Sequence record: NC_019521.1 | Strand: one strand, 5' to 3' | DNA length: 64,000 nucleotides | In this document: positions 3 to 34,923 of the stretch, in pieces | Layout: each line of letters starts with the position of its first letter | Numbering within the stretch: the stretch's first letter is position 1 | Notes under the pieces: model-generated | What the model was told of the DNA's origin: nothing | Seen by the model: only the letters and a program-made list of their open reading frames with translations | Databases searched by the model: none | Translations under genes and position numbers: made by a program

Positions 3-488
3 TCTGAAGCTTGGGGAATCTGTGGAGGTATATTTTTCATGGGTCGTGAAGCTTTCATAAAAGTTGGAGGATTCAATGAAGAATATCGAGTTTATGGAAT
101 GGACGATGTTGACTTTACTAATAGATTTCTGTTAAACGATTATATCGTTAAGAAGTTTCCTGAAGTATTGTTTCATCACTTATTTCACCCTAGAACTTTA
201 GAAAATTCAGATGAAGCTGAATTGGAAAGATATAAACAGGAACTTACTTACTGGTATATCAATAAGAAAAACTTTGAAGAACAAATAGAAATTCCAAAAT
301 CTGATAGACTTGTAAGAAATCATATTTCTGAAAGATTCTTAGAATTAGCTAAACGTGATGAAAACTTCTTAGAACATGAAGTTAAATTTACTACAGATTT
401 AACAAAATTCGATCTAACTAGATTCCCAGAAAAATTCCAAAGACAAATAGGAATTCTTAAAGATGATCCAAATAAATTTTACGGATAA
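3..488 (+). CDS. GT2/GT7C-like glycosyltransferase, 5' truncated by window edge
   Basis: Frame is open from nt 3 (SEAWGICGGIFFMGREAF..). It carries GGFNEEYRVYGMDDVDF and LFHHLFH motifs and is a paralog of the next gene. Confidence 0.8.
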   Translation, partial: SEAWGICGGIFFMGREAFIKVGGFNEEYRVYGMDDVDFTNRFLLNDYIVKKFPEVLFHHLFHPRTLENSDEAELERYKQELTYWYINKKNFEEQIEIPKSDRLVRNHISERFLELAKRDENFLEHEVKFTTDLTKFDLTRFPEKFQRQIGILKDDPNKFYG

Positions 489-504
489 GACCAAAACGAA
501 ACAT

Positions 505-1500
505 ATGAAACATATTGCATTTACGATTCCATTTTGGAATGTAGGAAACGAAAAAGAAAGATTAGAAAACATAGGATACGTTAAACGTTCTTGTGACAAT
601 TTCGCAGACTATTTCAACAAAAACAATAAGAACGATTTCAAGATAGATGTAATCCTAGCTAATCTTGGTGAAGAAATCAATCCGTTATATCCTGAAGCTA
701 GATTCTATCAACATACTGGTTTAAAATATCGTTTCGAAAAACCAACCAGAATGAATACTTTGTTTCTAGATTTACTAGAAGAAGGATATGATTTCGTTGG
801 TATGTGTGATCCTGATATCATACTATTCGAAGAATACTTTGAGAAGCTAACTAAGAATATCGAAGATAATCTTGATTATTTCTCAATGCTTACATATTCT
901 GTAGCAAGAACAAAACCGGAATTACGAAAGGATTTAATTCTAGAAACTAGAGAATTTCAACATCTTTCAAATCATGAACTAATTATCGAATCTAATGCAC
1001 AAGCTGAAAACTGGCGAGTTTGTGGTGGTGCTTATTTCATGTCATTAGAATTCTTCCGTGATTTAGGAGGATGGAACGAAGATTACAGAGTTTATGGAAT
1101 GGACGATGACGATTATACTTTCAGATTCGAATTAACTGGTGGTAGCGTTGTAACAGATACATCGATTATTTGGCATCATCTTTGGCATCCAACAGTATTG
1201 GGTACAGCACCTGATTACGAATTAGAAAGATACGAATATGAATGCATGTATCGTAGACTTTCTAAGGATGTTTATGAAGAACAAATCAAATCGCATCTGT
1301 GTGATAGAACTAATCGATTGGAGCATCTTTCTGATAGATTCAATAAAGCATATAGTTATCCAGATTCATTCATTAAAGCTGCTAAGACTAACAATGTATT
1401 CAGTTACGAAATCGGTAAAAGGTCTATCGAAACTATGCCAATCGAAATCAAACGTAAATTGGGATTAGTTAATGATGATAAATTTTATGGTTCTTGTTAA
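505..1500 (+). CDS. GT2/GT7C-like glycosyltransferase (GT-A fold)
   Basis: DxD motif (CDPDII), CGGAYFM, GGWNEDYRVYGMDDDDY and WHHLWH. ATG 505 preferred over the track start at 463. Confidence 0.8.
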   Translation: MKHIAFTIPFWNVGNEKERLENIGYVKRSCDNFADYFNKNNKNDFKIDVILANLGEEINPLYPEARFYQHTGLKYRFEKPTRMNTLFLDLLEEGYDFVGMCDPDIILFEEYFEKLTKNIEDNLDYFSMLTYSVARTKPELRKDLILETREFQHLSNHELIIESNAQAENWRVCGGAYFMSLEFFRDLGGWNEDYRVYGMDDDDYTFRFELTGGSVVTDTSIIWHHLWHPTVLGTAPDYELERYEYECMYRRLSKDVYEEQIKSHLCDRTNRLEHLSDRFNKAYSYPDSFIKAAKTNNVFSYEIGKRSIETMPIEIKRKLGLVNDDKFYGSC

Positions 1501-1574: not shown

Positions 1575-2180
1575 ATGAAATTAGTTATCGTAGAAGGAAT
1601 AGATAGAATCGGTAAAACTACATTCATATCAAATCTGAAAACAAAACTTGAAGAAACTAATTCTGATGTAATCATTGATAATAGAGTTCCGGTATGGTGC
1701 CCAAGGATAGCTTTGAATCATCCACCATATTGTTATGAATATTACAATGCTTTCGCATGGTCTCAGTTTCTTGAAATGTTGAAACTTTTCAATCATAAGG
1801 ATTCGATTATTATCATGGACAGACATCATGGTAGTTCAGAAGCTTATGGAATCATAAAACGTAAATCCATAATAGAAGAACTTTACGAATCAGTTGACAT
1901 TTTCAAAGAACGTATTCAAGAATTTGAAATCGAAATGATGAAACTTCTTGGAGAATCGAATGTTCATTATGTACAGTTTATTGCTGACAAGATTGGTATC
2001 AAGGACGATATAACGAAACTTGAAGATTTGAAATCAGTTAACAAGTATTACGAAGAAACTTTCGATAATCGTAAAATCAAAAACAAGTATCTGATAAAAC
2101 TTGAATCAGATGAAAACTTTGAAACGAACATCATGACTCATTTGGATTGGTTAAGTAAATTAATCAATGAAACTAAGTAA
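1575..2180 (+). CDS. Deoxynucleoside monophosphate (thymidylate-kinase-like) kinase
   Basis: P-loop VIVEGIDRIGKTT and IMDR motif. Confidence 0.8.
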   Translation: MKLVIVEGIDRIGKTTFISNLKTKLEETNSDVIIDNRVPVWCPRIALNHPPYCYEYYNAFAWSQFLEMLKLFNHKDSIIIMDRHHGSSEAYGIIKRKSIIEELYESVDIFKERIQEFEIEMMKLLGESNVHYVQFIADKIGIKDDITKLEDLKSVNKYYEETFDNRKIKNKYLIKLESDENFETNIMTHLDWLSKLINETK

Positions 2181-7540: not shown

Positions 7541-7566
7541 TTACATTTTGACATATTAAATAAAGG

Positions 7567-7596
7567 AAACGATACTGATAATTATCAGTATCGTTT
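7567..7596 (+). terminator. Perfect 30-bp palindrome / terminator
   Basis: aaacgatactgataattatcagtatcgttt followed by a T-run. Confidence 0.75.
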
Positions 7597-7605
7597 TTTA
7601 GTTTC

Positions 7606-7656: not shown

Positions 7657-8832
7657 ATGCGTAAACTATACATACTGAAATTCGATGAATCTTTGGATGA
7701 CGTCTCATGGTATTCTAAAGATTCAGATCATTTAACAGTTTCTGAAGTTAAGAACTTTGTAGAATTTGCTAAAGACGGATTCGAAATAAATCTAATTTCG
7801 TATATATCAGAAACTAGGAAACGTGACAATCTTACATTTCTAAACGTTTTCGATTTCATAGATACCGATATAAAGGAATCAGATGTTGTAATTTTCTGGA
7901 CTGGTTACAATTATTCGACTAGAGTTAAATGTGGTGTTTATGGAACTTTATGGTATACATGTTTCGCTTCACTACATAACAAACCAGTAACCCCTTACGT
8001 TTTATGTACTGATACTAGATGTTTCATGATGAATCCAGAATTCTTCATGGATAACAAAGTTTATAGTTCAGTTATCGGTAATACAATTGACAGTTTAGCT
8101 AAATCTGTTGATAAAGTAAAATTCAAATATCTAACACAGGCTAGAAATACTGAAGAATTTAAGAATCTTGTAAGAGCTAATCGAGACGCTAATCAAAATT
8201 TCTTAGAAACTATACATATTCCAACTCACTTACTTCCATTAGTTTCTCACAGAATGGAAAATATTACATATGAACATGACAATCAATATGTTTATTATGG
8301 TAGCGCTCCAATAGATTTTAGTAAGAAACGTGATTATCGTACTGAGAATATCTTTAATCTTTTCTATGCTAATAACTTTACAAATAAAGCTAAGGGTCGT
8401 TTAATCATAAATACTAAAGCTTGTGAAGTTCCAACTCAAATTACTAGTAATATCAAAGTATCTGATAGAATACCTTATTCAGAAATAAAGAATATGCTTA
8501 ATAAATCATTCGCTTCTGTTATTCTATCTGAAGAAGCTTATCAAAAGTGTGAGTTAATACCTAATCGTTTAATCGAAGGGTTAGCTGCTAAAACGTTATT
8601 ACTAATACATGAACAAGTATTGGGAGGTCTTATGAAAACTATTCATGATATTGGTTTTTCGTTATTACAGGTTATTGATATATCCAATGAAAGAGATTAC
8701 GAAACATCTAAACAGATCGATGAGCTAGCTTCAAATCATGAATTACGTAGAAGTATTATCATCAGTAATCAAAAACTTCTGAAAACTATTTTCAATCCAT
8801 TGAATCTTACAAATACAATAAATCGACTATAA
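7657..8832 (+). CDS. T4 beta-glucosyltransferase-like DNA glycosyltransferase (GT-B), paralog 1
   Basis: YVLCTDTRC vs BGT YYLFTDIRL. DRIPYSEIKNMLNKSFASVILSEEAY..IPNRLIEGLAAKTLLLI vs BGT GKIPMNMVSEKNSQAIAALIIGDKNY..TLRVWETMASDAVMLID (BGT sequence recalled). Confidence 0.7.
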   Translation: MRKLYILKFDESLDDVSWYSKDSDHLTVSEVKNFVEFAKDGFEINLISYISETRKRDNLTFLNVFDFIDTDIKESDVVIFWTGYNYSTRVKCGVYGTLWYTCFASLHNKPVTPYVLCTDTRCFMMNPEFFMDNKVYSSVIGNTIDSLAKSVDKVKFKYLTQARNTEEFKNLVRANRDANQNFLETIHIPTHLLPLVSHRMENITYEHDNQYVYYGSAPIDFSKKRDYRTENIFNLFYANNFTNKAKGRLIINTKACEVPTQITSNIKVSDRIPYSEIKNMLNKSFASVILSEEAYQKCELIPNRLIEGLAAKTLLLIHEQVLGGLMKTIHDIGFSLLQVIDISNERDYETSKQIDELASNHELRRSIIISNQKLLKTIFNPLNLTNTINRL

Positions 8833-8834
8833 AA

Positions 8835-9992
8835 ATGAATACAACAAAGAGACGACTATTTTTAATCAAATTCAAAGATTCGTTATCACCTGAATGTATC
8901 GATAAAGATACTATCAGATACAAAGAAATCTACAATGTTTTAAGATTCGTACCAACTAATGAATTCGAAATCAATCTAGTAAATTACGATAATCCGAAAG
9001 TTTCTGAAGAAAATAATCAACAGTATTACAAATACATTCATTATGAAGATTTCAAGAATCTGGAATTACTTGAAACGGATTTGTTAATTTTCTGGACTGG
9101 TTATATTTACGTTCCAACAGATGTCGATGTATCTAAAACTGATGCTTCTAATATTCGAGCATTTTATGAATGTTTAGAATCTACAAGAAATAAAGATAAC
9201 AAGCGATATCTGATTTGTACAGATACTAGATGTCCATTGATTAAGCCTGGTTTTTATTCAAGTAATGAAATATTCAAAGAAGAACTTAAGGATATCAATA
9301 TCGATGACATTCATTTGACATACCTAACACAAGCTATCGATCCTGAAGCATTTATCGAAATCGTTAAATCTTCAGAAATTAATAGTGTTCATAAAAATGT
9401 ATCAGCTATTCATATGAAGCTACATTTAGCTCCGTTAGTTTCACATGACATTCCAAAGATTAAGGAAAATCATAATGGTAAGTTTTTCTATTACGCTGGT
9501 GACTTACGTGATATCAGTAAACATAGATACGATAATATCATTAAGTTCTATTCAGTAGATTCTTCAGATTTATCAGTTAAACCATTGATAGCTTCAAACG
9601 TTCATCCAGATATTTACGATAAATTACCAAATGTTGAATTTATCAATAAGATACCATATTCTGAAGTTCCTGTAAGATTAAATGAAATGTTCGCTTCTGT
9701 TTGTTTCTCTGAAGCTGATTACGAAAAATGTAGACTTTTACCAAATCGTATTGCTGAAGGTATTGCTGCAAAAACACTTTTATTGATTCATCATAATATC
9801 GATCCAGAACGTAAGTTGAATTTAGAACCTTTACAGTATTTCGAAACTGTTGAAGACTTTAAGAAATCTTTGAAGTATTATTCAGAAAAACCTCATAGAC
9901 GTATTAACGCTATCAACAATCAACGTTATCAACTTTCGATAGAAGGTGATTTAGATGCTTTTCAGTTTTCAAGGGACTTTAGTACTATTTAA
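8835..9992 (+). CDS. T4 beta-glucosyltransferase-like DNA glycosyltransferase (GT-B), paralog 2
   Basis: YLICTDTRCP and NKIPYSEVPVRLNEMFASVCFSEADY..PNRIAEGIAAKTLLLIHHNID; clearly paralogous to 7657-8832. Confidence 0.7.
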   Translation: MNTTKRRLFLIKFKDSLSPECIDKDTIRYKEIYNVLRFVPTNEFEINLVNYDNPKVSEENNQQYYKYIHYEDFKNLELLETDLLIFWTGYIYVPTDVDVSKTDASNIRAFYECLESTRNKDNKRYLICTDTRCPLIKPGFYSSNEIFKEELKDINIDDIHLTYLTQAIDPEAFIEIVKSSEINSVHKNVSAIHMKLHLAPLVSHDIPKIKENHNGKFFYYAGDLRDISKHRYDNIIKFYSVDSSDLSVKPLIASNVHPDIYDKLPNVEFINKIPYSEVPVRLNEMFASVCFSEADYEKCRLLPNRIAEGIAAKTLLLIHHNIDPERKLNLEPLQYFETVEDFKKSLKYYSEKPHRRINAINNQRYQLSIEGDLDAFQFSRDFSTI

Positions 9993-9995
9993 TAT

Positions 9996-11228
9996 ATGAA
10001 TAAACCATTAATACTTAGAGAACTAATATTCCAACAATATTCTAGTTACGATAAGAACATCCAGATGTACAACATACATCTGGATGGTAACTTAAATGCT
10101 ACATTACATGCAATTTGTAACGATTTCAAAGTTATGACAAATGTAGCATTACATTTGAAACGTAATTTCCATCTAGAATATACAATCACTATTCCAAAGA
10201 ATACAAAACCTAATTCGTTAACATTGATTACTAATTTCGTAGAAGGTTTAGAAAAACTGATATCTAACGAAAACGTTTCATTATCCATCGTATTCAAAAA
10301 TATCAAATATAGAAACTCTGCTAAAGAAAATCGAGATAACGGTGAATGGATATTAGCAGATGGTATTAACGAAATCGATATTAACGAATTCGATTCTATA
10401 TCAACTAATTTCGAAAAATCTTTAGACTTAGTTAGTTCTTTCGAAGCTTTATACAATTGGAAATCTGAAGTATCTGAAGCTTTTAGAATCCTAGACATTA
10501 AGAAACGTAGATTCAGTTCTAGATTAAACGTTTCGTTACATTCTAAGGAAGATGAACGTGAATATCTTAAAGGTCTTGAGAAGAACTGTTCAACACTTTT
10601 CGCATTTTCAGATTCTGTGACATTACATAATCAAGCTCAATTAGATTACATAAAGAATTATTATGTTTCAGATACATATGATAAATTTAGACTTTTGAAT
10701 GGTAAAATAAACAAAGGTTTTAATGCTGAATTTATAGAATATCAAATGTCATTTTACAAATCTGTAAATACGATAAAGAAAAATCAATTGATTCAGTTCT
10801 TCGAAAACTATGATATAGAATACATATTTCCTTTTAGACTAACTGACCCGGATTGGGGATTTCAAAATCTTACTGATGAAGAGAAATCAAAAACTGTAGT
10901 AACTGATCCAACGAATTCGATACTATTAGTAACTGATGAAATACAAAAAGCTTTCATCGAATGTGTCAGAGGTTTGGATAAACGTACATTATTATTTACG
11001 TTATTCGATCTTATCAGAACTAAGAAAATAGATGTAAAGATTCCACTGTTTTCTAATCCTTTGAATATTTTACATCAGACAAGTATCGAAATACTTTATT
11101 TGATATACGATAATATCGATTTCAGATTCGATAAACATGATACTTTCGAAACTGACATTTACGATATGTTCTATGTAACTGGGAATACAACAAATTGGTT
11201 AAACAAAATAACAAAAACAAATGACTAA
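9996..11228 (+). CDS. Putative DNA arabinosyltransferase (Aat / RB69-type)
   Basis: Ordered motifs DGNLN, TIPKN, LHNQAQLDYI, IFPFRLTD, VTDPTNS and LHQTSIE match my recollection of the RB69-type Aat motifs DGNFQ, IPKN, LNPRQREYI, FWPFRISD, ITDPNDS and LHPGTIE. Needs a profile search. Confidence 0.55.
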   Translation: MNKPLILRELIFQQYSSYDKNIQMYNIHLDGNLNATLHAICNDFKVMTNVALHLKRNFHLEYTITIPKNTKPNSLTLITNFVEGLEKLISNENVSLSIVFKNIKYRNSAKENRDNGEWILADGINEIDINEFDSISTNFEKSLDLVSSFEALYNWKSEVSEAFRILDIKKRRFSSRLNVSLHSKEDEREYLKGLEKNCSTLFAFSDSVTLHNQAQLDYIKNYYVSDTYDKFRLLNGKINKGFNAEFIEYQMSFYKSVNTIKKNQLIQFFENYDIEYIFPFRLTDPDWGFQNLTDEEKSKTVVTDPTNSILLVTDEIQKAFIECVRGLDKRTLLFTLFDLIRTKKIDVKIPLFSNPLNILHQTSIEILYLIYDNIDFRFDKHDTFETDIYDMFYVTGNTTNWLNKITKTND

Positions 11229-11928
11229 AATACAAGATAAACAAGAATTCGATAGTTTAGATGAAGCTTATCTAACTTTACTAAAAAGTTTGATCGATTT
11301 AGAACCTAACGAATTAGGTGAACGTGAAATGTTTGGTATCGCTTTCGATATCAAAAATATTGATGAAACTGATCCTAAAACTAATTTCAGTAAAATCAAA
11401 GAACGTAATATCAATTTAGTATTTCAAAATGCTTTCGCTCGTTGGTTAATGTCAGGTTCTAATTCAGCTGATGAGCTTTTACCACTGAATAAACGAACTT
11501 CTCAGTTTAATGAAATCGAAGGTAGAAATCTTCTATATCCACCACGTATTCAGAATCAAATTTATGACATAGTTGATGAATTAACCGAAAATCCTATGTC
11601 AAGACGTGCTACATTATTGATACTTGACGAAAGGGATCAGATAGTTAGAAAAGAAAAACGTGAGAAATCTGATTGTAAGAAAGAATATCCTTGTACAATA
11701 GCATTACATTTCTTTATTCGTAATAACAGATTACATTCAAATGTTATGATGCGTTCTAATAATGCTGTTAAAACTATATGTTTCGATTTTTCTAATTTCG
11801 CTTTCGTACAAAATTGTATAGCTAGAGAATTAGATTTGAAAGCTGGAACTATGCATTATTACATATCAAATGCTCACATTTTACCTGAAGATTATGAACA
11901 TGCTTTAAAAATCTGTGAAGCTAACTAA
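11221..11928 (+). CDS. Thymidylate-synthase-family dCMP-modifying enzyme (dCMP hydroxylase/hydroxymethylase-like)
   Basis: SRRA, catalytic YPC158, MRSNN(178-181), Asp189 at the TS Asn177 specificity position, SNAHI. Short TS fold. Confidence 0.8.
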   Translation: MTKIQDKQEFDSLDEAYLTLLKSLIDLEPNELGEREMFGIAFDIKNIDETDPKTNFSKIKERNINLVFQNAFARWLMSGSNSADELLPLNKRTSQFNEIEGRNLLYPPRIQNQIYDIVDELTENPMSRRATLLILDERDQIVRKEKREKSDCKKEYPCTIALHFFIRNNRLHSNVMMRSNNAVKTICFDFSNFAFVQNCIARELDLKAGTMHYYISNAHILPEDYEHALKICEAN

Positions 11929-11956
11929 GAAACATTCGAATTGAGTTTGGTAATAT
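11928..11956 (+). promoter_or_regulatory. Phage promoter AGAAAC-N17-TAATAT
   Basis: Consensus-like; implies the next gene starts at ATG 11977, not TTG 11941. Confidence 0.55.
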
Positions 11957-11976
11957 TATACCAAACTCAATTTAAC

Positions 11977-13134
11977 ATGGCTAGAATAATAAAACTAGCA
12001 ATAATTGGTAACAGTGAGTATAACGATTTCGATCAGTTTACGAATCAGGTTACTGATGTATTGCAAAAATTAAAGAACACTACAGAAGACGTTTTGATCG
12101 AATATCATTACGTATCGATTGGTAGTAAATTAGGTGAATTGTCGAAGAGATTTCTAAATGCTAACCCAAAGCAACTCTATTCATCTCATACTATTCAATA
12201 CAAGAATCTTAATGCTAAACCTTGTACTGTAAGAATAGATAAGAACGGTGATTCTTATAACAGTTTAGCTCCTTTAGCTACACTTATAAATCTAATGAAT
12301 GTAGCAGATTATGTAATAGCTTTCTGGAATGGTACTGAAAAAGATTCTTTCATAAAAAGGGCTTTGACTAAATTCAAATCGAAATATTCTAAGAATTCTG
12401 AATATCGACAAAGATTACGAATAGTAAAATTCGAATCAGCTTGGATGCAAGCAAAAGGTGATTATGTTAAAGACATAGATCAGAATAAGGATTCATTGTT
12501 TTCAAAAGATTCTAAAGAATCGTATGTAACGATTAAAACTAAATTGAATACTATCAATCAGTCAGGATTAACACATGACGAGATAAACAAAAAGTTCAAT
12601 GATGTTGTAAAGAATCTAACAATAACTACTGAATCGCATTTACATGGTCCTAACTTTAAAATGTTACATGGTAATGGATCGTTAGAAGGTAAGCATACTA
12701 TCAGAATAAGTGGAACTCTCAGAAAGACTATGAATATCGAAAATCTTAACGATAATAACATAGCAACTGTAGCCTTTTATCTACCTGTAAATGAATTTGC
12801 AGATTTACTAAAGTTCATAATTTGGTGTCATGAAAACATAAAGATTATGGATGTTTCAGAAACTACAGAACTTCATAATAACGATGCTATAAATCCTCAA
12901 TGGTCTTACATGAATCATAAGGGTGAAAGTGTACATTTCTGTTACTATGAACAGAAACTTCCTGAAGTATCTTTCCAAATGATTAAGATGTATTCGATAG
13001 TTAACAATGTATCATACGAACAATTCGTAAATCTTTCACAATGGGGATTGTTTAACGCTAAAGGTTCTATCGTTTTCAAAGCTAGGAAATACTTGGAATG
13101 TTTACATGATTTGAAACTTATCCAAAAAGATTAG
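11977..13134 (+). CDS. SLOG (DUF2493/YspA-like) domain protein with unknown C-terminal domain
   Basis: KLAIIGNSEYNDF and ADYVIAFWNG resemble DUF2493 KLAIIGSRTFNDY and ADAVIAFWDG. Confidence 0.55.
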   Translation: MARIIKLAIIGNSEYNDFDQFTNQVTDVLQKLKNTTEDVLIEYHYVSIGSKLGELSKRFLNANPKQLYSSHTIQYKNLNAKPCTVRIDKNGDSYNSLAPLATLINLMNVADYVIAFWNGTEKDSFIKRALTKFKSKYSKNSEYRQRLRIVKFESAWMQAKGDYVKDIDQNKDSLFSKDSKESYVTIKTKLNTINQSGLTHDEINKKFNDVVKNLTITTESHLHGPNFKMLHGNGSLEGKHTIRISGTLRKTMNIENLNDNNIATVAFYLPVNEFADLLKFIIWCHENIKIMDVSETTELHNNDAINPQWSYMNHKGESVHFCYYEQKLPEVSFQMIKMYSIVNNVSYEQFVNLSQWGLFNAKGSIVFKARKYLECLHDLKLIQKD

Positions 13135-13822: not shown

Positions 13823-14845
13823 ATGTCAAATATTAAACGTTCAGTTCTTGTAACTGGTGCTCTTGGATTCATTGGTTCTAATTTCGTTAGAACTATGGCA
13901 AAAAGATATCCAGATTACTTATTCATTCCACTTGATAATTTCGGATATGCTGCAAACCTGGAACATATCCCAGTCTTTGAAAAACTTACAAACGTTACAA
14001 AAGTTCAAGAAATAACTTTAGGTAGTTTCGATGAAGCTGAAAACTTTATTCTAGCTTCAATTTTCAAAACTTATGACATTGATACTGTGGTACATTTTGC
14101 TGCTGAATCACATGTCGATAATTCGATTTCTAATCCTGACATATTCGTTTTAGCTAATGTCAAAGGTACTGTCGATTTATTGAATGTTGCTAAGAATTAT
14201 TGGGCTGATCGTAAAGATGTAATATTCCATCATGTTTCAACCGATGAAGTATTTGGGGCTCTTGGAATGGAAGGTTCATTTAACGATGATTCTAATTACG
14301 ACCCACATTCACCTTATTCAGCTTCAAAAGCTGCAAGTGATATGTTCGTTAAAGCTTATGCTACGACTTACAATATGTTAGTATCGATTTCTAATTGTTC
14401 AAATAACTTCGGACCATATCAACACAAGGAAAAACTGATTCCAAAAGTTTTAGACGCAATTAAGAACAAAACTGAAATACCTCTTTACGGACATGGTCAA
14501 AATGTTAGAGATTGGTTACATGTTTTAGATCATAACGACGCTATAGATATGATTATCCATCATACTTTGAAATCTAAAGAATCTCGTAGAACTTGGTTAA
14601 TCGGTGGAGGTGTTGAATTAACAAATATAGAATTAATCGATAGACTAACAGAATCTGCTAATGAACATGATAATACATTTGATTATAAGTCATTGATTAA
14701 ATTCGTATCAGATCGTGCTGGTCATGATTTACGATATTCAATAGATTCTAGCACCTTACGTAAAGAACTTGAATGGAAGCCAAAATACGACATTACTAAA
14801 TGTATACCTTACATGATCGGAGAAACTTTAGGATTTACGAAATAA
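13823..14845 (+). CDS. rmlB: dTDP-glucose 4,6-dehydratase
   Basis: GALGFIG Rossmann motif, HFAAESHVDNSI, HVSTDEVFG, YSASK, DRAGHDLRY. Confidence 0.92.
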   Translation: MSNIKRSVLVTGALGFIGSNFVRTMAKRYPDYLFIPLDNFGYAANLEHIPVFEKLTNVTKVQEITLGSFDEAENFILASIFKTYDIDTVVHFAAESHVDNSISNPDIFVLANVKGTVDLLNVAKNYWADRKDVIFHHVSTDEVFGALGMEGSFNDDSNYDPHSPYSASKAASDMFVKAYATTYNMLVSISNCSNNFGPYQHKEKLIPKVLDAIKNKTEIPLYGHGQNVRDWLHVLDHNDAIDMIIHHTLKSKESRRTWLIGGGVELTNIELIDRLTESANEHDNTFDYKSLIKFVSDRAGHDLRYSIDSSTLRKELEWKPKYDITKCIPYMIGETLGFTK

Positions 14846-15417
14846 TGAAAAACATACCAGCAGGAATTGAAGGATGTATTTTTATACAGAATTCACAATT
14901 TAAAGATGAACGTGGATCGTTCAGAGAAACTTTCAGTAAAGAACGATTATCGTTCATATGTAAACATGAATTTGTTCAGGACAATGTTTCGATATCACAT
15001 AAGAATGTATTACGTGGAATGCATATTCAAACAGGTGATTCTGTACAAGGTAAACTTGTTACATGTCTTAAAGGTAGATTAATCGATTTAGTTGTAGACA
15101 TTCGTAAAGATTCTCTTACTTACGGTAAGACTATTACAGTATTACTACATGAACCAAATATGTCGTTATTTGTACCACGTGGTTGTCTACATGGATTCAT
15201 ATCATTAGAAGACGATACAATCATGCATTACAAATGTGATAACTATTATTCGAAAGAACATGAAGTATCTTATGACCCTTTAAGTTTACCGGAAAATATA
15301 TTCATACAAATCGAACAGGGTTTTAATATCGGTATAGACGATTTGATTATCAATTCTAAAGACAGAACTGGTAAAATGATCTATACTAACGAAGGAATTT
15401 TAAGTTCATTCATTTAA
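14845..15417 (+). CDS. rmlC: dTDP-4-dehydrorhamnose 3,5-epimerase
   Basis: DERGSFRE, VQDNVS, VLRGMHIQ, QGKLV, HGF. TAATG coupling to rmlB gives start 14845. Confidence 0.9.
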   Translation: MKNIPAGIEGCIFIQNSQFKDERGSFRETFSKERLSFICKHEFVQDNVSISHKNVLRGMHIQTGDSVQGKLVTCLKGRLIDLVVDIRKDSLTYGKTITVLLHEPNMSLFVPRGCLHGFISLEDDTIMHYKCDNYYSKEHEVSYDPLSLPENIFIQIEQGFNIGIDDLIINSKDRTGKMIYTNEGILSSFI

Positions 15418-15420
15418 CAT

Positions 15421-16302
15421 ATGCTTACAAGAAATAGAAAAGGAATTATTTTAGCAGGTGGGTCTGGGACCCGCTTGCATCCATTGACTATCAGTGTTTC
15501 GAAACAGTTATTACCTGTATACGATAAACCAATGATTTACTATCCATTGACAACTCTTATCGAAGCTGGTATAAACGAAATACTTATAATATCAACACCA
15601 CAGGATAGAAATTCTTTCGAGAACTTACTAGGTAACGGTTCACAATTTGGTGTTAGAATAGAATACGCTGTTCAAGAAAAACCTAATGGTTTAGCACAAG
15701 CTTTCGTTATCGGTGAAGAATTCATAGGTAAATCTAAAGTAGCTCTGATTTTAGGTGACAACATTTTCCATGCTTCTAATATAGATAGATTACTTATGGA
15801 AGCTAATATGTCTGATAAAAATACGATATTTGCATATCGTGTAAATGATCCTCAGAGATATGGTGTAGTTGAATTCGATGAATATGATAACGCTGTTTCG
15901 ATCGAAGAAAAACCTTTGAATCCTAAATCTAATTACGCAGTACCAGGCTTATATTTCTATAATAACGATGTTATCGAAGTAGCTAAGACTATCAAACCTT
16001 CAGCTCGTGGAGAATACGAAATATCAGATATTAACGCATATTACTTAGATAAGAATCAATTATCAGTTAAAGCTTTTGACAGAAGTGGTACTACATGGTT
16101 AGATACTGGTACTATTCAGTCTTTAGCTGAAGCTTCTTTATTTGTTGAAGTCATGCAAAATCGTACCGGTAATTTAATAGGTAGCCCCGAAGAAGCTGCA
16201 TTTAGACATGATGAAATATCTAAAGACTCATTAATTGAATCTGCTAAGAAATATGATAAGTCTGGTTATGGTGAGTATCTTTTGAAACTTGTACAGAAAT
16301 GA
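15421..16302 (+). CDS. rmlA: Glucose-1-phosphate thymidylyltransferase
   Basis: GIILAGGSGTRLHP, SKQLLPVYDKPM, LGDNIF, EEKP, WLDTGT. Confidence 0.95.
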   Translation: MLTRNRKGIILAGGSGTRLHPLTISVSKQLLPVYDKPMIYYPLTTLIEAGINEILIISTPQDRNSFENLLGNGSQFGVRIEYAVQEKPNGLAQAFVIGEEFIGKSKVALILGDNIFHASNIDRLLMEANMSDKNTIFAYRVNDPQRYGVVEFDEYDNAVSIEEKPLNPKSNYAVPGLYFYNNDVIEVAKTIKPSARGEYEISDINAYYLDKNQLSVKAFDRSGTTWLDTGTIQSLAEASLFVEVMQNRTGNLIGSPEEAAFRHDEISKDSLIESAKKYDKSGYGEYLLKLVQK

Positions 16303-16312
16303 AAAACAAGAC

Positions 16313-16340
16313 TTGGAATGCTGTTTAAACAGCATTCCAA
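16313..16340 (+). terminator. Perfect 28-bp palindrome containing a -35 box
   Basis: ttggaatgctgtttaaacagcattccaa. Confidence 0.7.
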
Positions 16341-25215: not shown

Positions 25216-27090
25216 ATGCAATTCGAAAAACATTCTGTTCAATTTCTTATCGATCTTTACAACAATGCTAAAGAACAGTATTACAATACTGGAAATTCCC
25301 CACTTACCGATTCAGAATTCGATGAATTAGAGGATTATTTGCTATCTAATGAATACGTCGAGAAATATGTTGGTACTGAAGAAATCAAAGGTACTAAATC
25401 ACCTCATGTAACTCCAATGTTATCTCTTGACAAAGTTCAAGTATTTACTGATGGATTTGAAGGGCATCATTTCGATCATGTTCTTGCAGCTCTTGGTAGA
25501 TATGATCAATTTGTTACTCATAAACATGGTGATCATATGCTTCAAGCTTCATTTAAATTAGATGGTTTAGCTGCAAATATCACATATGCTGATGGAGTTC
25601 TTAAAACTATCGCAACACGTGGTAACGGTAAAATAGGTTCTGATATTACTGAAAAATGTAAACATTTAGTTCCAAACAAATTATCAACAAATTTCAGTGG
25701 TGAGGTTCGTGGTGAAATCTTTATCAAGAAATCTACATTCATTCAGAAATATTCTGAATACAAAAATCCAAGAAACTTAGCTGCCGGTATTGTTGGTCAA
25801 AACGATATCAAGGACCCAAGATTAAAAGATTTGAATATCTTCTTATTTGAAGTGAAAGGTTCGGTTAAGACTTTATTCGAAATCGTTGACTTACGTCCAT
25901 TGATAATCGATTCTATTTCGTTCTTCAATACATTCGATGAAATGTCGAAAGCTTATCATGAATTACTTGATAAACGTACAAATCTCGATTATCCAACAGA
26001 TGGTATCGTAATTAGATTATCAAGTGCTGTTGAACATCGTGATAATGGTTTAGCACCACTTTACTCAGTAGCTGTTAAATTCCCTCCAATGTTAGCAAGA
26101 ACTAAAATTGCTAAAATCTCATGGAATCTTCGTAAATCTGGAAAATTCATTCCACATGCAACATTAGAACCTGTAGAATTGGATGGAACTATCGTAACTC
26201 ATGCAGCTTTACATAACTATGGATGGGTTAATGAAAGAGGTTGTTGGGAAGGTGCTGAGGTTGTAATTGGTAAAAATGGTGACATCATTCCACAAATTCA
26301 ATCAGTAGTAACAAAATCAGAACCTTCTAATCTACCAGAAAATCATGTAATTTCTGATAACGGTCTTCATATGTTACCATCGGGTGATATGTCTGACGTT
26401 ATTAATCGCAACAAATTCGTTCAAGGTTTTTATACTTTAGGAATGTTTGGATTCGGTGGTGCTACATTCATCAAACTTTATGATTTGATGGAAGGTAAAA
26501 TCGAAAACATCTTTAACGATGATTTGTTTACTAAGAAAAATCTAGCACCAATACTAGGTTTAGGAATGACTGGTCCTAAATTCCTTAAGGAACGTCAACA
26601 TGTTTTAGTAAATATGAATCTTCCTAAGTTGCTATTAGCTATGCAATTCGATTCTTGTGGCTGGAGACATTGTTTGAAACTGTCTAAAGCGTATTCGAAA
26701 CCGGATGCTGAACTTGATACATCTGGATTAAATTCTAAAGTTGTATATTCAGTAACACAGGATCAAAACAATATCTATCGTATAACTTCAGCAATTCAAT
26801 TAGCGTTAAGAAACGGTATCGAACTTGAAGATATCGAAGAAAAAGTTATCGAAAAAGGTTCAGTTACTTTTGAAATGACTGGATCACCTAAATTAGCTGG
26901 ATTCAAATCTAAGGAAGCTTTCGTACAATATGTATCAACTTGGAATCATACGAAACTTAAGAAAGATACCACTTATCTGATAACAGATGATAAGGTTTCG
27001 AAAACTTCAAAAATGAAATTCGCGGACGCTAACAATGTAACAGTTTTAACTTACGAAGAAGCTGTAGCTAAATTTAAAGAATCTTTGTAA
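25216..27090 (+). CDS. ligA: NAD-dependent DNA ligase
   Basis: N-terminal YYNTG..SDxEFD, KLDG adenylation motif, TRGNG, RGE, DGIV, AVKF, GDIIP, C-terminal BRCT-like domain. Confidence 0.9.
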   Translation: MQFEKHSVQFLIDLYNNAKEQYYNTGNSPLTDSEFDELEDYLLSNEYVEKYVGTEEIKGTKSPHVTPMLSLDKVQVFTDGFEGHHFDHVLAALGRYDQFVTHKHGDHMLQASFKLDGLAANITYADGVLKTIATRGNGKIGSDITEKCKHLVPNKLSTNFSGEVRGEIFIKKSTFIQKYSEYKNPRNLAAGIVGQNDIKDPRLKDLNIFLFEVKGSVKTLFEIVDLRPLIIDSISFFNTFDEMSKAYHELLDKRTNLDYPTDGIVIRLSSAVEHRDNGLAPLYSVAVKFPPMLARTKIAKISWNLRKSGKFIPHATLEPVELDGTIVTHAALHNYGWVNERGCWEGAEVVIGKNGDIIPQIQSVVTKSEPSNLPENHVISDNGLHMLPSGDMSDVINRNKFVQGFYTLGMFGFGGATFIKLYDLMEGKIENIFNDDLFTKKNLAPILGLGMTGPKFLKERQHVLVNMNLPKLLLAMQFDSCGWRHCLKLSKAYSKPDAELDTSGLNSKVVYSVTQDQNNIYRITSAIQLALRNGIELEDIEEKVIEKGSVTFEMTGSPKLAGFKSKEAFVQYVSTWNHTKLKKDTTYLITDDKVSKTSKMKFADANNVTVLTYEEAVAKFKESL

Positions 27091-30024: not shown

Positions 30025-30744
30025 ATGAACAAACAAACTAATCTCCTGTTTGACGACAGACAAGACTTAGCTAAATCATTGGAACATAGACTGACCAATG
30101 TGAACAACCAACTTAACCAATTTGTAGCTGAATTCCGTAAACTTGTACAAGACCCGCAAAGTAATGTATTACACATGTTCGATATGATTATCAACAAAAA
30201 TGATAGAATCGATATCGATCATACAATCTATTTATGTGGTATCGGTAAGAACATTCCATCACTTCGTAAAGCTTCAGCAACTTTTAAATCGTTAGGTCTT
30301 AAATGTGAAGTACTTGACGCAGTTGATGCTTTACATGGTGATTTAGGTTGTATCAGGGATTATGATACTGTAATATTCTTTTCGAAATCTGGTAATACTT
30401 CAGAATTGTTAAGAACTATGCAATATTTAGATTCCATAAACACTGTAATTGATGGTGAAAGTTCTGTATCGAATAAATCTATTTGTATAGATATGTTTGC
30501 AGTTTCAATGAATAGCGAATTCGATTCAGGTTTTGAAAACTTCAAAACCATCAATCATGTAGTATTACCGAAAACCGGTGAAGCTGACGAATTCAATAAA
30601 GTCCCAACCACTTCACCGATAGCCTTCCAAATCTTCTTAGACATGTTAGCTTGTGAATATGCTTCTGTTTATGATTTGACTTTAGAAGATTTCGGTGGTA
30701 ATCACCCGGGTGGTGACATTGGAAAATTCATAAACAAAAACTAA
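30025..30744 (+). CDS. KdsD/GutQ-like SIS-domain arabinose-5-phosphate isomerase (no CBS domains)
   Basis: CGIGKN..RKASATFKSLG, ALHGDLG, FSKSGNTSEL, VPTTS, NHPGG at the C-terminus. Confidence 0.8.
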   Translation: MNKQTNLLFDDRQDLAKSLEHRLTNVNNQLNQFVAEFRKLVQDPQSNVLHMFDMIINKNDRIDIDHTIYLCGIGKNIPSLRKASATFKSLGLKCEVLDAVDALHGDLGCIRDYDTVIFFSKSGNTSELLRTMQYLDSINTVIDGESSVSNKSICIDMFAVSMNSEFDSGFENFKTINHVVLPKTGEADEFNKVPTTSPIAFQIFLDMLACEYASVYDLTLEDFGGNHPGGDIGKFINKN

Positions 30745-30993: not shown

Positions 30994-31416
30994 ATGAACA
31001 AATACGATTTCAATTGGGTAAGGGATGAATCCTTAGACACTTATGATGGTTATTATCATGCTTATATCGTTACTAGAAAGTTTGGAAACGTTAAAGCTAG
31101 ACTAGGAATAAATCTAGACCCTTACATGAATTGTTATGTTTCTTTAAGTAGTGGTAGGAAACGTAAGCAATTAAGTATTTACGAAGACAAACCTGAAAAG
31201 AATTCATGTGGAATCGAAATATTGATATGGACTAAGGAGGCTATGCTAGATTTCCCTATTTGGTTTAATGACCGTCATATCAATAAACTTAATTCTATGC
31301 TAGTTACAGGTTCTGATACTAGACGTTTCAAAATATACAAGCGTTATTTGATACCTCATGGATTCTATACACAAAAACAGCATGACGGTGGAATCTATCT
31401 GTTCAAGAAACTTTAG
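30994..31416 (+). CDS. Hypothetical protein
   Basis: TTCAATT-ATG start. Confidence 0.65.
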   Translation: MNKYDFNWVRDESLDTYDGYYHAYIVTRKFGNVKARLGINLDPYMNCYVSLSSGRKRKQLSIYEDKPEKNSCGIEILIWTKEAMLDFPIWFNDRHINKLNSMLVTGSDTRRFKIYKRYLIPHGFYTQKQHDGGIYLFKKL

Positions 31417-31466: not shown

Positions 31467-33197
31467 ATGGAGCATGTAGTTATATTGGCTGGTGGTCTTG
31501 GTTCTAGACTTCATAAATTTACAGCTAATCTTTATCCTAAGATTTTGATTTCGATGGGTAACGAAACTATGTTAGACAAACTTGTAAATTACTATTCAGT
31601 TTACAAGGATTTGAAATCGTTTAACATTGTCGTTTCGACTGAAGAAAATCAAAGACTTATATCTAATTATCTGAATCGATATCATTCTAACGCTTTCGGA
31701 AAAAATACAAAAATCGATGTATTACTTTACAAAAAGTTAGATGGTTCTTTCAATACGATTTACAACCTATTCAAGGGTCAGGGATTGAAGAATGTAGTAT
31801 TCAATTGGTCTGATATCATTCCAACATCACATCTTCAGGTAACAAAATTATTGACTAACGAATTCAAGATAATTACTGATGTTCAAAAACGTCATAGGAT
31901 GGGTATCGAATTTAGACAAGGTACAAGAACTTATGAAGTTGTCAAATATTCGAAAGATGATATGAAGGGTAACATTCCAGGATATTTCTTTATAGGTGAT
32001 TTCGATAGTATATTCGATCATGTATTCGTTGATAACTTAAGACTATATCATAATCTGTCACCAGAAATAGATTTGATGGATGCTTTAGAAGCACAAATCG
32101 AAAAGAATAGATGTATAGTTTCAACTAATGAAATAGATTTTATCGATATCGGAGATGTTGAAAAATATGAAAAATACATGGAAACGATATCGTTAGAAAC
32201 TAGATATTTCAATAGTTTAGAAATTACTGAAAATACAGTTCGTAAGAAAGCTTTAAACGAAAAAGGTATGTCAGTAATCGATAATGAATTGAATTGGTAT
32301 TCTACAGTTGGTAGATTCTTTCCAGATACTAAAAATCGTCCAGCTATTCCAAGAATTTCTAATATTCAAAAGAATTATGATTATCCTCAAGGTGAACAGA
32401 AATTTCATTCTATTGAATTTTCAATGAATCGTATTGACGGTAAAACTGTTGACGAATATCTTTGGAACGATCCTTTAGAAATGTATAATGTATTACGTTT
32501 ATTTGATACTGAGATTTCTAAGTTTCATAATATCGAACAATCGAATAAACCTGAAAAACGTTGGAATGAACATCATATGCATGAATATTTCAAAGTTACA
32601 TATCAACGTTTAGATGAAATATTCTTCATGTTACAAGCTGATGTACATCATTTCAAAATCGGTGATAAGATTCATAGTTTCAAAGGTGATACTATTCATT
32701 TACTTGAACATACTATGAAATATCTTTATGACGCTTATTCTAAATCTGAAGCTAATGAATGGGGATTGATTCATGGTGACCCAAACACTTCTAACGTAAT
32801 GATTTCTAATGATGGTACCGAAATGTTCTTTATCGACCCAAGAGGATTATTCGGACATTCTTTGATGTTTGGTGATATTTATTACGATTGGGCTAAATTC
32901 ATATATGGACTTCAAGGTTATTCTAGATTCAATTTAGATAAGACTTTCGAATTACATTATGACGAACATAGTAAAACTATGCAAGTAGATTTCTTCAAAT
33001 ATGGAATCTATGATATCGATACAGTGTTACATACTGTAAAACAGATTAGACCTGATTTAGATATCAAGCGTTTACGTGTTATCGTTGGTTTGATTCATGT
33101 TAAATTAGCACAGTACATAAGAAACAATCCATCAAAAATGTACGCAACTTATTATTACGGTAAATACTTATTAGAAACAACCTTATCTGAAAAATAA
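31467..33197 (+). CDS. Sugar-1-phosphate nucleotidyltransferase fused to APH/choline-kinase-like sugar kinase
   Basis: N-terminal VILAGGLGSRL..PKIL, NWSD and DIGD. C-terminal LIHGDPNTSN and FFIDPRG kinase motifs. Confidence 0.8.
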   Translation: MEHVVILAGGLGSRLHKFTANLYPKILISMGNETMLDKLVNYYSVYKDLKSFNIVVSTEENQRLISNYLNRYHSNAFGKNTKIDVLLYKKLDGSFNTIYNLFKGQGLKNVVFNWSDIIPTSHLQVTKLLTNEFKIITDVQKRHRMGIEFRQGTRTYEVVKYSKDDMKGNIPGYFFIGDFDSIFDHVFVDNLRLYHNLSPEIDLMDALEAQIEKNRCIVSTNEIDFIDIGDVEKYEKYMETISLETRYFNSLEITENTVRKKALNEKGMSVIDNELNWYSTVGRFFPDTKNRPAIPRISNIQKNYDYPQGEQKFHSIEFSMNRIDGKTVDEYLWNDPLEMYNVLRLFDTEISKFHNIEQSNKPEKRWNEHHMHEYFKVTYQRLDEIFFMLQADVHHFKIGDKIHSFKGDTIHLLEHTMKYLYDAYSKSEANEWGLIHGDPNTSNVMISNDGTEMFFIDPRGLFGHSLMFGDIYYDWAKFIYGLQGYSRFNLDKTFELHYDEHSKTMQVDFFKYGIYDIDTVLHTVKQIRPDLDIKRLRVIVGLIHVKLAQYIRNNPSKMYATYYYGKYLLETTLSEK

Positions 33198-34186
33198 TGA
33201 AATTTAAAGGAACTGACCAAAAAACTTCAAGACTGATATTCACCGACTTCGATGGTATCTTCAGTCATGATATGCAATACTCATATATTGACAGAACTAG
33301 TAACGGTCCTGAGAAAAATGCAAAAACTGTAGCATTCGGTATTCGTGATGTTGTTAAGATTCTGAATTACGCTGGTTTCGAAATTCATATTGTTTCGGGT
33401 GATTCTACAGAAAAAGGTCAAGCTTTAACTAAGAAGTTTTTACATAACATTCATGTGGAATCTGTAAACTTTGTACCAACCGATCAAAAACTTGATAGAA
33501 TTCTTGAACTAGCTAATGGTAGGGATTTCATCTGGATCGGTGAGGACTTGATTGACTTACAAATCAAGGAATTCGCCATGAATTACATAACTACCGATAA
33601 CGCTCCAAACATGTTGAAGGAATTAGCTGATGCTAACTTTAGACAAGATTATTTTTGGCACGATTTGTTATCATATTTAATGAAAACTAAAATCTTCAAT
33701 GTTGTTGACGAAGATACACATTGTCTGATAAAATACGCTTTACAGAAATACATCAAACCAGATTTCTTCAAGTTAGTAAGTTACGGATTGATTGATAAAA
33801 ACTATCTAATCGAATCCTTAGAAACATATCGAGGTGTTGAAGAACTTAACGAAATCAAAGTTAACGATATTGAAGACTTCATGGATAAGATAAAAACTAC
33901 AGAAGTTCTAAAAACTGTACCAGTCTTTGGTAAACTCGATTTGATTTCATCTATGAAAGTTTTAGTCAATAACATTTGTAAACATGAACTTAAGTTTGTA
34001 TATACTAAGAACGTTCATTTGTTTTCAGACACTGTAAATATCGGTGACATATTCGAAGTTCTTTCATCATTAAGATTTACAGAATCTTCTAACAGTTTCC
34101 ACGATTACTATATCTACGGATTTACAAAAATCGTAGAAGGTAAGATTGAAAACATGTTAAACGAGAAGTTAGGAGCTAAATTCTAG
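33197..34186 (+). CDS. KdsC-like HAD phosphatase with C-terminal extension
   Basis: FTDFDG motif I, IVSGD motif II, WIGEDLIDL motif IV (KdsC YIGDDLIDW). Confidence 0.75.
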   Translation: MKFKGTDQKTSRLIFTDFDGIFSHDMQYSYIDRTSNGPEKNAKTVAFGIRDVVKILNYAGFEIHIVSGDSTEKGQALTKKFLHNIHVESVNFVPTDQKLDRILELANGRDFIWIGEDLIDLQIKEFAMNYITTDNAPNMLKELADANFRQDYFWHDLLSYLMKTKIFNVVDEDTHCLIKYALQKYIKPDFFKLVSYGLIDKNYLIESLETYRGVEELNEIKVNDIEDFMDKIKTTEVLKTVPVFGKLDLISSMKVLVNNICKHELKFVYTKNVHLFSDTVNIGDIFEVLSSLRFTESSNSFHDYYIYGFTKIVEGKIENMLNEKLGAKF

Positions 34187-34287: not shown

Positions 34288-34923
34288 ATGTTTAGTTCAA
34301 AAAATGAAAAATCAGATCAGAAACACCCAATCTTAAAATTAATCGAATCTATAAAGAAATTCTTTGATTTCGATACAGTACTGTCAATTATTATAATGGT
34401 ATTCATACTATGGTTACTATTAGCTTCTAAAGGTTCAGCAAAGGCTGAAATGCTGTCAACAGATTCTGATATTGTTGACGTAAATCTCCCAGAAAAATTC
34501 AATGAAAAATCTACTTCAAGTAAAATCAAGAACAAAGAGGATTTGTATGTTTACATGAAGAAAGCTGGAATTAAGTTTCCTGAGCTTGTATGGTCTCAAG
34601 CTATGATGGAATCTGCTTGGATGAATTCAGCAGTTTTTAATCGTTCTAATAATCTTTTTGGAATGAAGAAATCTGGAAAACGTGACCATTTACAAATACA
34701 TAAACGTAACGATTCTTATTCACATTTCGAAACAATCAAGAAGTGTGTATTAGATTACAAGTTACATCAAGAACAAGTTCTTAAAATCGAAAACATTAAA
34801 AACGAATCTCAATATATGAGAAGGTTAATCAAAACTGGTTATTGTCCTGATGAAGGATATGCTAGAAAGATATTAGCTATTCGTAAGAATACAGATTTTA
34901 ACGAATTGAAAAAATCTAGTTAG
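34288..34923 (+). CDS. Glucosaminidase (GH73-like) peptidoglycan hydrolase with N-terminal TM segment
   Basis: SQAMMESAW..NNLFGMK, YSHF and GYCPDEGYARKI. Confidence 0.75.
   Translation: MFSSKNEKSDQKHPILKLIESIKKFFDFDTVLSIIIMVFILWLLLASKGSAKAEMLSTDSDIVDVNLPEKFNEKSTSSKIKNKEDLYVYMKKAGIKFPELVWSQAMMESAWMNSAVFNRSNNLFGMKKSGKRDHLQIHKRNDSYSHFETIKKCVLDYKLHQEQVLKIENIKNESQYMRRLIKTGYCPDEGYARKILAIRKNTDFNELKKSS

Follow-up and report, generated by a model that had tools for sequence, protein, structure and literature searches.

A candidate base-proximal glycosyltransferase of the 5-hydroxycytosine pathway, gp181, in Sphingomonas phage PAU

Described 5-hydroxycytosine systems and the gene gp181

The thymidylate-synthase (TS) homologues gp216 of phage RL38J1 and gp48 of phage RB69 have been experimentally shown to produce 5-hydroxy-deoxycytidine monophosphate (5-hydroxy-dCMP), and the proteins RL38J1 gp215, RB69 gp46:47 (a single gene that a sequencing error divides in two) and DLP3 gp79 have been predicted to add the first sugar to the base, 5-hydroxycytosine (5hoC) (PMC13326640). 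The use of uridine diphosphate (UDP)-arabinofuranose has been shown in vitro for a further pair of transferases, DLP3 gp76+77. Here, the gene gp181 of Sphingomonas phage PAU is compared with these systems, within a stretch of 64,000 nucleotides (the window) that is 100% identical to the record NC_019521.1 and in which the record coordinate equals the window coordinate plus 124,000; the positions below are those of the window, unless the record is named. PAU was the first jumbo phage noted for heavily modified DNA, the modification being reported as extensive (PMC7824862). The modification is not named in the papers searched, no report of its chemistry was found in the searchable literature, and PAU is not mentioned in PMC13326640. 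The open reading frame (ORF) in question carries in the record only the name 'gp181', with no function:

9996..11228, + strand: gp181, ATG at 9996, stop codon at 11226-11228, 410 aa (record 133996-135228)

The evidence set out below makes gp181 very probably a divergent member of the base-proximal ('GT1') family of 5hoC glycosyltransferases. On balance, we favour its function as the base-proximal arabinosyltransferase acting on 5hoC in a DNA hypermodification pathway, where the catalysis, the arabinose donor and the DNA acceptor are what we infer.

Sequence family and predicted fold of gp181

No Pfam or NCBIfam match was obtained with gp181, and its single PHROG match was weak and of unknown function. 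The exhaustive HMMER/phmmer search of 1.84 billion protein representatives (E<=1e-3) returned 13 proteins, four of them below 1e-30 and one of these four being gp181 itself, with P0006-P0013 among the direct phmmer matches; the word 'orphan', used for this ORF in an earlier note made from the letters alone, was therefore a fair one. In the annotated phage genomes, tblastn found, besides PAU, only hypothetical proteins of the Rhizobium phages RL38J1, RL2RES and P9VFCI, which share 24% identity with gp181 along 88% of its length, the RL38J1 protein being gp215. The relatives that bridge gp181 to the described systems come from metagenomes and IMG/VR, such as the ORFs of the contigs L007, L009, L010 and L011, each of which matches gp181, RB69 gp46, RB69 gp47 and RL38J1 gp215 in pairwise phmmer comparisons. 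The family profile, built from gp181 and its 12 direct matches and searched against a set of 1,714 ORFs, found the T4-like GT1 members at E 1e-25 to 1e-39, RB69 gp47 at 2e-18, RB69 gp46 at 2e-11 and RL38J1 gp215 at 1e-21. The family alignment retrieved five PAU-clade proteins only in a word-indexed protein search; no glycosyltransferase Pfam match was found in any of the 38 family members, even at E<=1, and neither the family profile nor gp181 alone matched anything among the PDB sequences. The protein gp181 is a divergent addition to a family described in 2025-2026. The GT1 family is present in 353 phage records, the listed entries of which are labelled as hypothetical or as 'RNA polymerase binding protein'. 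The latter label, given to T4-like members in some GenBank records (e.g. NC_055742.1, PQ572755.1, MK295203.1), looks like a propagated mis-annotation.

The earlier note had based its reading on six short motifs of the RB69-type arabinosyltransferase, and each of them occurs exactly once in gp181 and in the order claimed: DGN at 30, IPKN at 66, NQAQLDYI at 212, PFRLTD at 279, TDPTNS at 303 and LHQTSIE at 359. They fall on the best-conserved columns of the 38-sequence family alignment and are not chance strings; the residues D30, P67, Q215, P279 and E365 are conserved in all 38 sequences, and N32, F280, R281, D284 and H360 in 37 of the 38. The equivalent blocks of the RB69-type consensus are KDGN, VPFN, LNxSQKD, FFPFRISD, TDPND and FHPGLGE.

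The AlphaFold model of gp181 from the single sequence was unusable (predicted local distance difference test, pLDDT, 36), and the model made with the 38-sequence alignment reached a pLDDT of 91.2 and a predicted template-modelling (TM) score, pTM, of 0.91, with a TM-score of 0.95 to the model that BFVD gives independently for this protein. The modelled fold is GT-B. The best whole-length match in the Foldseek search of the PDB was MshA (3c4q, E 1.6e-6, probability 1.0), with further matches to sucrose-phosphate synthase 6kih, GumK, the UDP-GlcNAc 2-epimerases 1v4v and 1o6c, sucrose synthase and GlgM, the epimerase 7vza being also among the fold matches; the same templates are given for RB69 gp46:47, DLP3 gp79 and RL38J1 gp215 (PMC13326640, Table 1). 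MshA and sucrose-phosphate synthase, the retaining GT-B enzymes of GT4 and the best structural matches over the whole length, share only ~10% identity with gp181 and have unrelated acceptors, and none of the 38 family members matches Pfam Glycos_transf_1. The nearest viral models were a 311-aa protein of Acinetobacter phage KARL-1 (2e-13), a protein of Serratia phage Muldoon, and RB69ORF047c (E 3e-7, TM 0.78 on the target). In the gp181 model, the first helix of the N-domain is capped by DGN; in the C-domain, FPFR comes after the first strand, and H360...E365 stands at the beginning of a helix. The equivalent positions of GT4 enzymes bind phosphate and ribose or sugar, and, by the topology of the model, the three motifs would occupy such phosphate- and ribose/sugar-binding places.

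The arabinosyltransferase-like (Aat-like) reading of the earlier note is supported by the match of the gp181 profile to the RB69-type cluster-embedded transferases, by the GT-B model and by the genes for nucleoside diphosphate-arabinose in PAU, and the profile and structural similarity to Aat/GT-B proteins, whose absence had been named beforehand as the point against it, was found in both kinds. The RB69-type relative is gp46:47 (DLP3 gp79), the proposed first transferase, and not ORF003c. The name 'Aat' may stand for either of these two RB69 genes; according to one secondary mention, Aat can be deleted in phage Bas46.

The likeness to RB69 gp46:47 and DLP3 gp79 comprises the profile homology, the common motifs DGN, P, N..Q, FPFR.SD, TDPN and H....E, the GT-B fold, with the nearest PDB templates in common, and the position beside a D169N TS homologue; moreover, genomes of the RB69/DLP3 type contain, as PAU does, the isomerase, AfhE-like and HAD genes for arabinose and the gp56-like deoxycytidine triphosphatase (dCTPase) (PMC13326640). 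However, the identity of gp181 to these proteins, as to the T4-like members in general, is only 15-20%; gp181, like the rest of the PAU clade, is ~100 aa longer and carries insertions; the transferase precedes the TS homologue in PAU and follows it in RB69 and DLP3, with the PAU kinase 8 kb upstream; the HAD phosphatase of PAU belongs to the KdsC type, in the fused or linked form of metagenomic phages, and not to the RB69 gp51 type; the RmlABC genes are extra in PAU; and PAU is, unlike RB69 and DLP3, a 219-kb jumbo phage outside the Straboviridae. In RL38J1 (Pootjesviridae), gp215, a predicted galactosyltransferase 1 on 5hoC and the one named phage protein that tblastn found directly, is located between the TS homologue gp216 and the kinase gp214, which is the same synthase-GT1-kinase triad, and has the same fold neighbour 1o6c. 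In contrast to PAU with its arabinose genes, RL38J1 encodes a UDP-galactopyranose mutase and no arabinose genes, its DNA carrying galactose and then glucose (PMC13326640). The alpha- and beta-glucosyltransferases of T4 are GT-B proteins, like gp181, which glycosylate a modified-cytosine hydroxyl in phage DNA post-replication, and the T4 beta-gt gene adjoins the TS-family gene 42 as gp181 adjoins gp182, but their acceptor is 5-hydroxymethylcytosine and their donor UDP-glucose. The T4 beta-gt query had no match in PAU, and the T4 glucosyltransferases were absent from the top 50 fold matches of gp181.

The adjoining synthase homologue and the sugar genes

The gene that follows gp181 bears on the acceptor that would be available to it:

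11221..11928, + strand: gp182, TS homologue with the 5-hydroxy-dCMP synthase signature

The overlap with the start of a TS-family gene, pointed out in the earlier note, amounts to 8 nucleotides shared by gp181 and gp182, ATGACTAA, and suggests translational coupling. In the alignment of gp182 with E. coli ThyA, T4 gp42, RB69 gp48 and RL38J1 gp216 (E. coli ThyA numbering), the catalytic C146 is retained, the substitution N177D speaks for cytosine specificity, and D169N is the published diagnostic of 5-hydroxy-dCMP synthases (PMC13326640). The substitutions E58F and L143E and the loss of W80 (W80S in gp182) are, like D169N and N177D, found as in the validated synthases RB69 gp48 and RL38J1 gp216; the T4 hydroxymethylase retains E58, W80 and D169. 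The best PDB relatives of gp182 were the CMP hydroxymethylase MilA and two 'thymidylate synthase' entries of 234-238 aa that align like RB69 gp48. Judging by this signature, gp181 is most likely provided with 5-hydroxycytosine as its acceptor rather than with hydroxymethylcytosine, and it can be expected with good confidence to glycosylate 5hoC. The search of 114 kb of PAU with E. coli ThyA found gp182 only, with no canonical thymidylate synthase seen there; a DHFR-like gp158 is annotated at 117107-117646 of the record.

A TS homologue stands beside the GT1 homologue in PAU, and likewise in 14 of the 19 related loci examined (L004, L005, L007, L009-L011, L013-L016, L018, L021, L022 and RL38J1). 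The TS homologues beside the gp181-family genes of L009 (18-698) and L010 (3615-4307) have Ser at the ThyA position 169, which is neither the Asn of 5-hydroxy-dCMP synthases nor the Asp of hydroxymethylases and thymidylate synthases, so that the published signature allows no prediction of their product. A distinct gp181-family clade in L012, L017, L019, L020 and L023 (IMG/VR contigs, 40-50 kb) has a Tmk-like kinase and an RB69 gp50-like protein as its flanking genes, and no TS homologue, isomerase or AfhE gene was found within 8 kb of it.

Two further genes of PAU may serve the supply of the modified nucleotide. One of them lies in the window:

1575..2180, + strand: gp172, Tmk-like nucleotide kinase

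It stands 8 kb upstream of gp181 in PAU and directly upstream of the gp181 homologue in L004 and L005, and the kinase-GT1-TS triad of RB69, DLP3 and RL38J1 is seen in PAU-like contigs. The other, gp106 (record 84904-85407; L059 10904-11407; outside the window), is annotated as dUTPase and matches the dCTPase gp56 of RB69 at 1.8e-18, which makes it a predicted gp56-like dCTPase.

The genes that could provide the sugar donor are located ~20 kb downstream of gp181:

30025..30744, + strand: arabinose-5-phosphate isomerase homologue with a SIS domain (phrog_5670, E 4e-79; RB69 gp55, 2e-14)
31467..33197, + strand: AfhE-like bifunctional protein, N-terminal nucleotidyltransferase and C-terminal APH-type kinase (phrog_4098, 2e-158)
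33197..34186, + strand: protein of 329 aa with a KdsC-type HAD phosphatase domain in its N-terminal half

The AfhE-like protein is homologous to RB69 gp52:53 (gp52 6e-23, gp53 1e-9), and its presence in PAU was already recorded by Thomas et al. 2018 (PMC6024577). The 329-aa protein shows the motifs DFDG, SGDS and GEDLID and a weak match to KDN-9-phosphatase, and is not of the RB69 gp51 type (no match to RB69 gp51 in the window). Its HAD domain is homologous (E 1e-20 to 2e-22) to the HAD domain that is fused N-terminally to gp181 homologues in three phage contigs. These HAD-GT1 fusions of ~545 aa (L007 8001-9650, P0006; L011 7449-9077; L015 7452-9107) have the TS homologue on one side and the isomerase and AfhE-like genes on the other, and provide a direct physical link of the gp181 family to arabinose activation. 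The 140-aa ORF at 30994-31416, between the isomerase and AfhE-like genes, was considered as a phosphatase of the RB69 gp51 type and rejected, as it had no match to RB69 gp51; it also matched nothing in Pfam, PHROGs and NCBIfam and is absent from the PAU-like contig L058. The arabinose genes are flanked by an NAD-dependent DNA ligase (25216-27090; LigA type, with OB and weak BRCT domains) on one side and by a glucosaminidase-type endolysin (34288-34923) on the other.

The string of genes to which gp181 belongs contains another possible source of sugar, and several proteins which may use it, with a further pair at the beginning of the window:

7564..7599, + strand: terminator-like hairpin upstream of gp179
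7657..9992, + strand: gp179 and gp180, directly upstream of gp181 and within its gene string
11941..13134, + strand: gp183, 397 aa, directly after the TS homologue gp182
13823..16302, + strand: gp185-gp187, RmlB, RmlC and RmlA (deoxythymidine diphosphate (dTDP)-glucose 4,6-dehydratase, 3,5-epimerase and glucose-1-phosphate thymidylyltransferase)
16313..16340, + strand: terminator-like hairpin after RmlA
39..1500, + strand: gp170 (the window holds its C-terminal part only) and gp171, GT-A-type glycosyltransferase-like, Glyco_transf_7C

The genes gp179-gp187, bracketed by the two hairpins, possibly form a single transcription unit. An inverted repeat with a 13-bp stem inside gp181 (10058-10086), called as terminator-like on the minus strand, is probably due to chance. 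RmlBCA follow gp183-gp184, 2.6 kb downstream of gp181, and are a possible source of a second sugar donor. RmlD was not found in the window, so that the phage by itself does not encode a complete dTDP pathway, and the product of the pathway in PAU would end at dTDP-4-keto-6-deoxy-L-mannose, barring a host or unrecognised reductase. The PAU-like metagenomic contig L004/L058 encodes the kinase, the gp181-like protein, the TS homologue, the gp183-like protein, the isomerase and the AfhE-like protein with no Rml genes, and this points to arabinose as the conserved phage-encoded donor of the clade and to Rml as a PAU-specific addition. From the gene content, arabinose has a slightly better than even chance of being the donor of gp181; the assignment goes no further because the family is defined by its position beside the 5-hydroxy-dCMP synthase and not by the sugar.

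The proteins gp179 and gp180 are tandem paralogues with 34% identity (phrog_32512, unknown function), and the PAU-like contigs have a single gp179/gp180 copy, followed by the kinase that sits 8 kb upstream in PAU. The protein gp183 and the gene at 11955-13145 of L004 have the same length (396-397 aa) and the same place after the TS homologue, with an identity of 26% that is limited to 114 N-terminal residues, and no other relative or family was detectable for the two. For gp179/gp180 and gp183, no family, PDB match or profile link to either transferase family was obtained; gp179 and gp180 are unproven candidates for further transferases. The pair gp170/gp171 is kept in the PAU-like contigs.

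The proposed pathway, competing explanations and significance

In the pathway proposed for PAU, the gp56-like dCTPase gp106 would supply dCMP, which the flavin-type TS homologue gp182 would hydroxylate to 5-hydroxy-dCMP; the Tmk-like gp172 and the host kinases would convert this to the triphosphate, for incorporation into DNA as 5hoC by the phage polymerase. Then, gp181 would place the sugar of a nucleotide-sugar donor on the 5-hydroxyl, with the formation of an ether-linked O-glycoside, the sugar being most probably arabinose made ready by the phage isomerase, the AfhE-like kinase/pyrophosphorylase and the HAD phosphatase. Other PAU proteins may add further sugars. Tentatively, and with considerable doubt, a mixed 5hoC glycan of a hitherto undescribed kind may be imagined, in which gp181 adds the base-proximal arabinose and other proteins extend it with an RmlABC-derived 6-deoxyhexose of the rhamnose type; the extenders would be gp179/gp180 and gp183, which have no recognisable family, or the GT-A-like gp170/gp171.

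Several observations weigh against the assignment of gp181 as the arabinosyltransferase of this pathway. The profile of 15 T4-like members, searched against the PAU ORFs with default filters, missed gp181, and with the filters off it ranked gp181 first of the 397 PAU ORFs at an E of only 0.0015, so that the link between gp181 and GT1 depends on the intermediates and the structure. The TM-scores of the fold search were modest (0.40-0.45), as is expected for two-domain GT-B proteins. In the family tree, which did not resolve the donor specificity, the PAU clade of five sequences takes its own deep branch outside the arabinose-associated T4-like clade and is possibly nearer, on a long branch, to the galactose-associated RL38J1 gp215. 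No member of the GT1 family has a demonstrated activity, and with DLP3 gp79 alone, 5hoC DNA was not arabinosylated in vitro (PMC13326640). Finally, RmlABC and gp181 apparently share a transcription unit, which makes a dTDP-6-deoxyhexose donor possible.

The last point leads to the explanation that gp181, with the family and the 5hoC acceptor unchanged, transfers a different first sugar, namely a dTDP-6-deoxyhexose made through RmlA/B/C or a host UDP-hexose, with the arabinose being added by another PAU transferase. It finds support in the place of RmlB/C/A only 2.6 kb downstream in the same terminator-bracketed string, in the inclusion of the predicted galactosyltransferase RL38J1 gp215 in the family, in the position of PAU outside the arabinose clade of the tree, and in the presence of gp170/171, gp179/180 and gp183 as other candidate users of arabinose. 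Nevertheless, we hold it to be unlikely, though deserving of attention, since the PAU-like contig keeps the gp181-like and arabinose genes with no Rml, the HAD-GT1 fusions tie the family to the arabinose pathway, and the dTDP pathway of the phage is incomplete with no RmlD found in the window. The acceptor rather than the donor is at issue where gp181 is supposed to glycosylate the free nucleotide, i.e. 5-hydroxy-dCMP or its di- or triphosphate, before replication and not 5hoC in DNA. Both routes are left open by the experiments of PMC13326640, in which single transferases were inactive on 5hoC DNA, and a pathway at the nucleotide level would agree with how tightly GT1 is coupled to the synthase and the nucleotide kinase; at the same time, the polymerase would need to accept a bulky glycosyl-dNTP. 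The T4 alpha- and beta-glucosyltransferases act after replication. Since the characterised phage sugar modifications of hydroxymethyl pyrimidines are all post-replicative (PMC13326640, introduction), we regard a nucleotide acceptor as improbable.

A role of gp181 outside DNA modification, as a GT-B glycosyltransferase or a UDP-GlcNAc 2-epimerase-like protein for the glycans of the cell surface or the virion, could draw on the epimerases 1v4v, 1o6c and 7vza among the fold matches and on the other sugar genes of PAU (Rml, GT-A-like), which could serve surface glycans. It appears highly improbable in view of the GT1 homologues adjoining the D169N-type TS homologue in unrelated phage lineages, of the 8-nt overlap with gp182 and the translational coupling that it suggests, and of the gp181 homologues being known only from phages with glycosylated 5hoC. 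Even less can be said for gp181 as the orthologue of RB69 ORF003c (gp3), i.e. as the protein adding the second arabinose, a possibility that we consider negligible. Both proteins are GT-B and come from phages with arabinose genes, and ORF003c was first published as the RB69 arabinosyltransferase (PMC6024577). However, RB69 ORF003c and DLP3 gp76-77, the second and third arabinosyltransferases, share only the GT-B fold class with gp181 and constitute a separate sequence family with no detectable similarity to it: no BLASTP or phmmer similarity was found, the gp181 family profile misses the ORF003c-type ORFs present in the 1,714-ORF set, and the hhalign profile-profile comparison of the two families gave a probability of 1.6%. 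The orthology is thereby refuted at the level of sequence families. Homologues of RB69 gp3 were found neither in the PAU window by the direct search nor indirectly in 114 kb of PAU.

With the arabinosyltransferase function of gp181 as the preferred reading, gp181, the gp182 signature and the arabinose genes together predict that PAU DNA carries glycosylated 5-hydroxycytosine, which would give a testable chemical explanation for the long-known modification of this DNA. The glycosylation of 5hoC, hitherto a matter of Straboviridae and Pootjesviridae, would extend to an unrelated lineage of 219-kb phage, and the family of the first-sugar transferases is far more divergent than its T4-like members suggest. 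The recognition of this family helps to predict which phages are resistant to restriction enzymes and CRISPR, or sensitive to defences that depend on modification. The mixed glycan with both sugars, if true, would bring a 6-deoxyhexose to phage DNA for the first time, and would make PAU the first jumbo phage with a low-GC host to have a 5hoC pathway.

Some features of the window as a whole may be added. With few exceptions, the ORFs of 90 aa or more lie on the + strand, as do nearly all the annotated genes, and the G+C content across the window (1-64000) is ~30%. The genus Sphingomonas has ~65% G+C. The host named in the PAU record is Sphingomonas paucimobilis, yet the nearest relatives of PAU are described in papers as phages of Chryseobacterium and Tenacibaculum; considering these relatives together with the difference in G+C content, the named host may be wrong.

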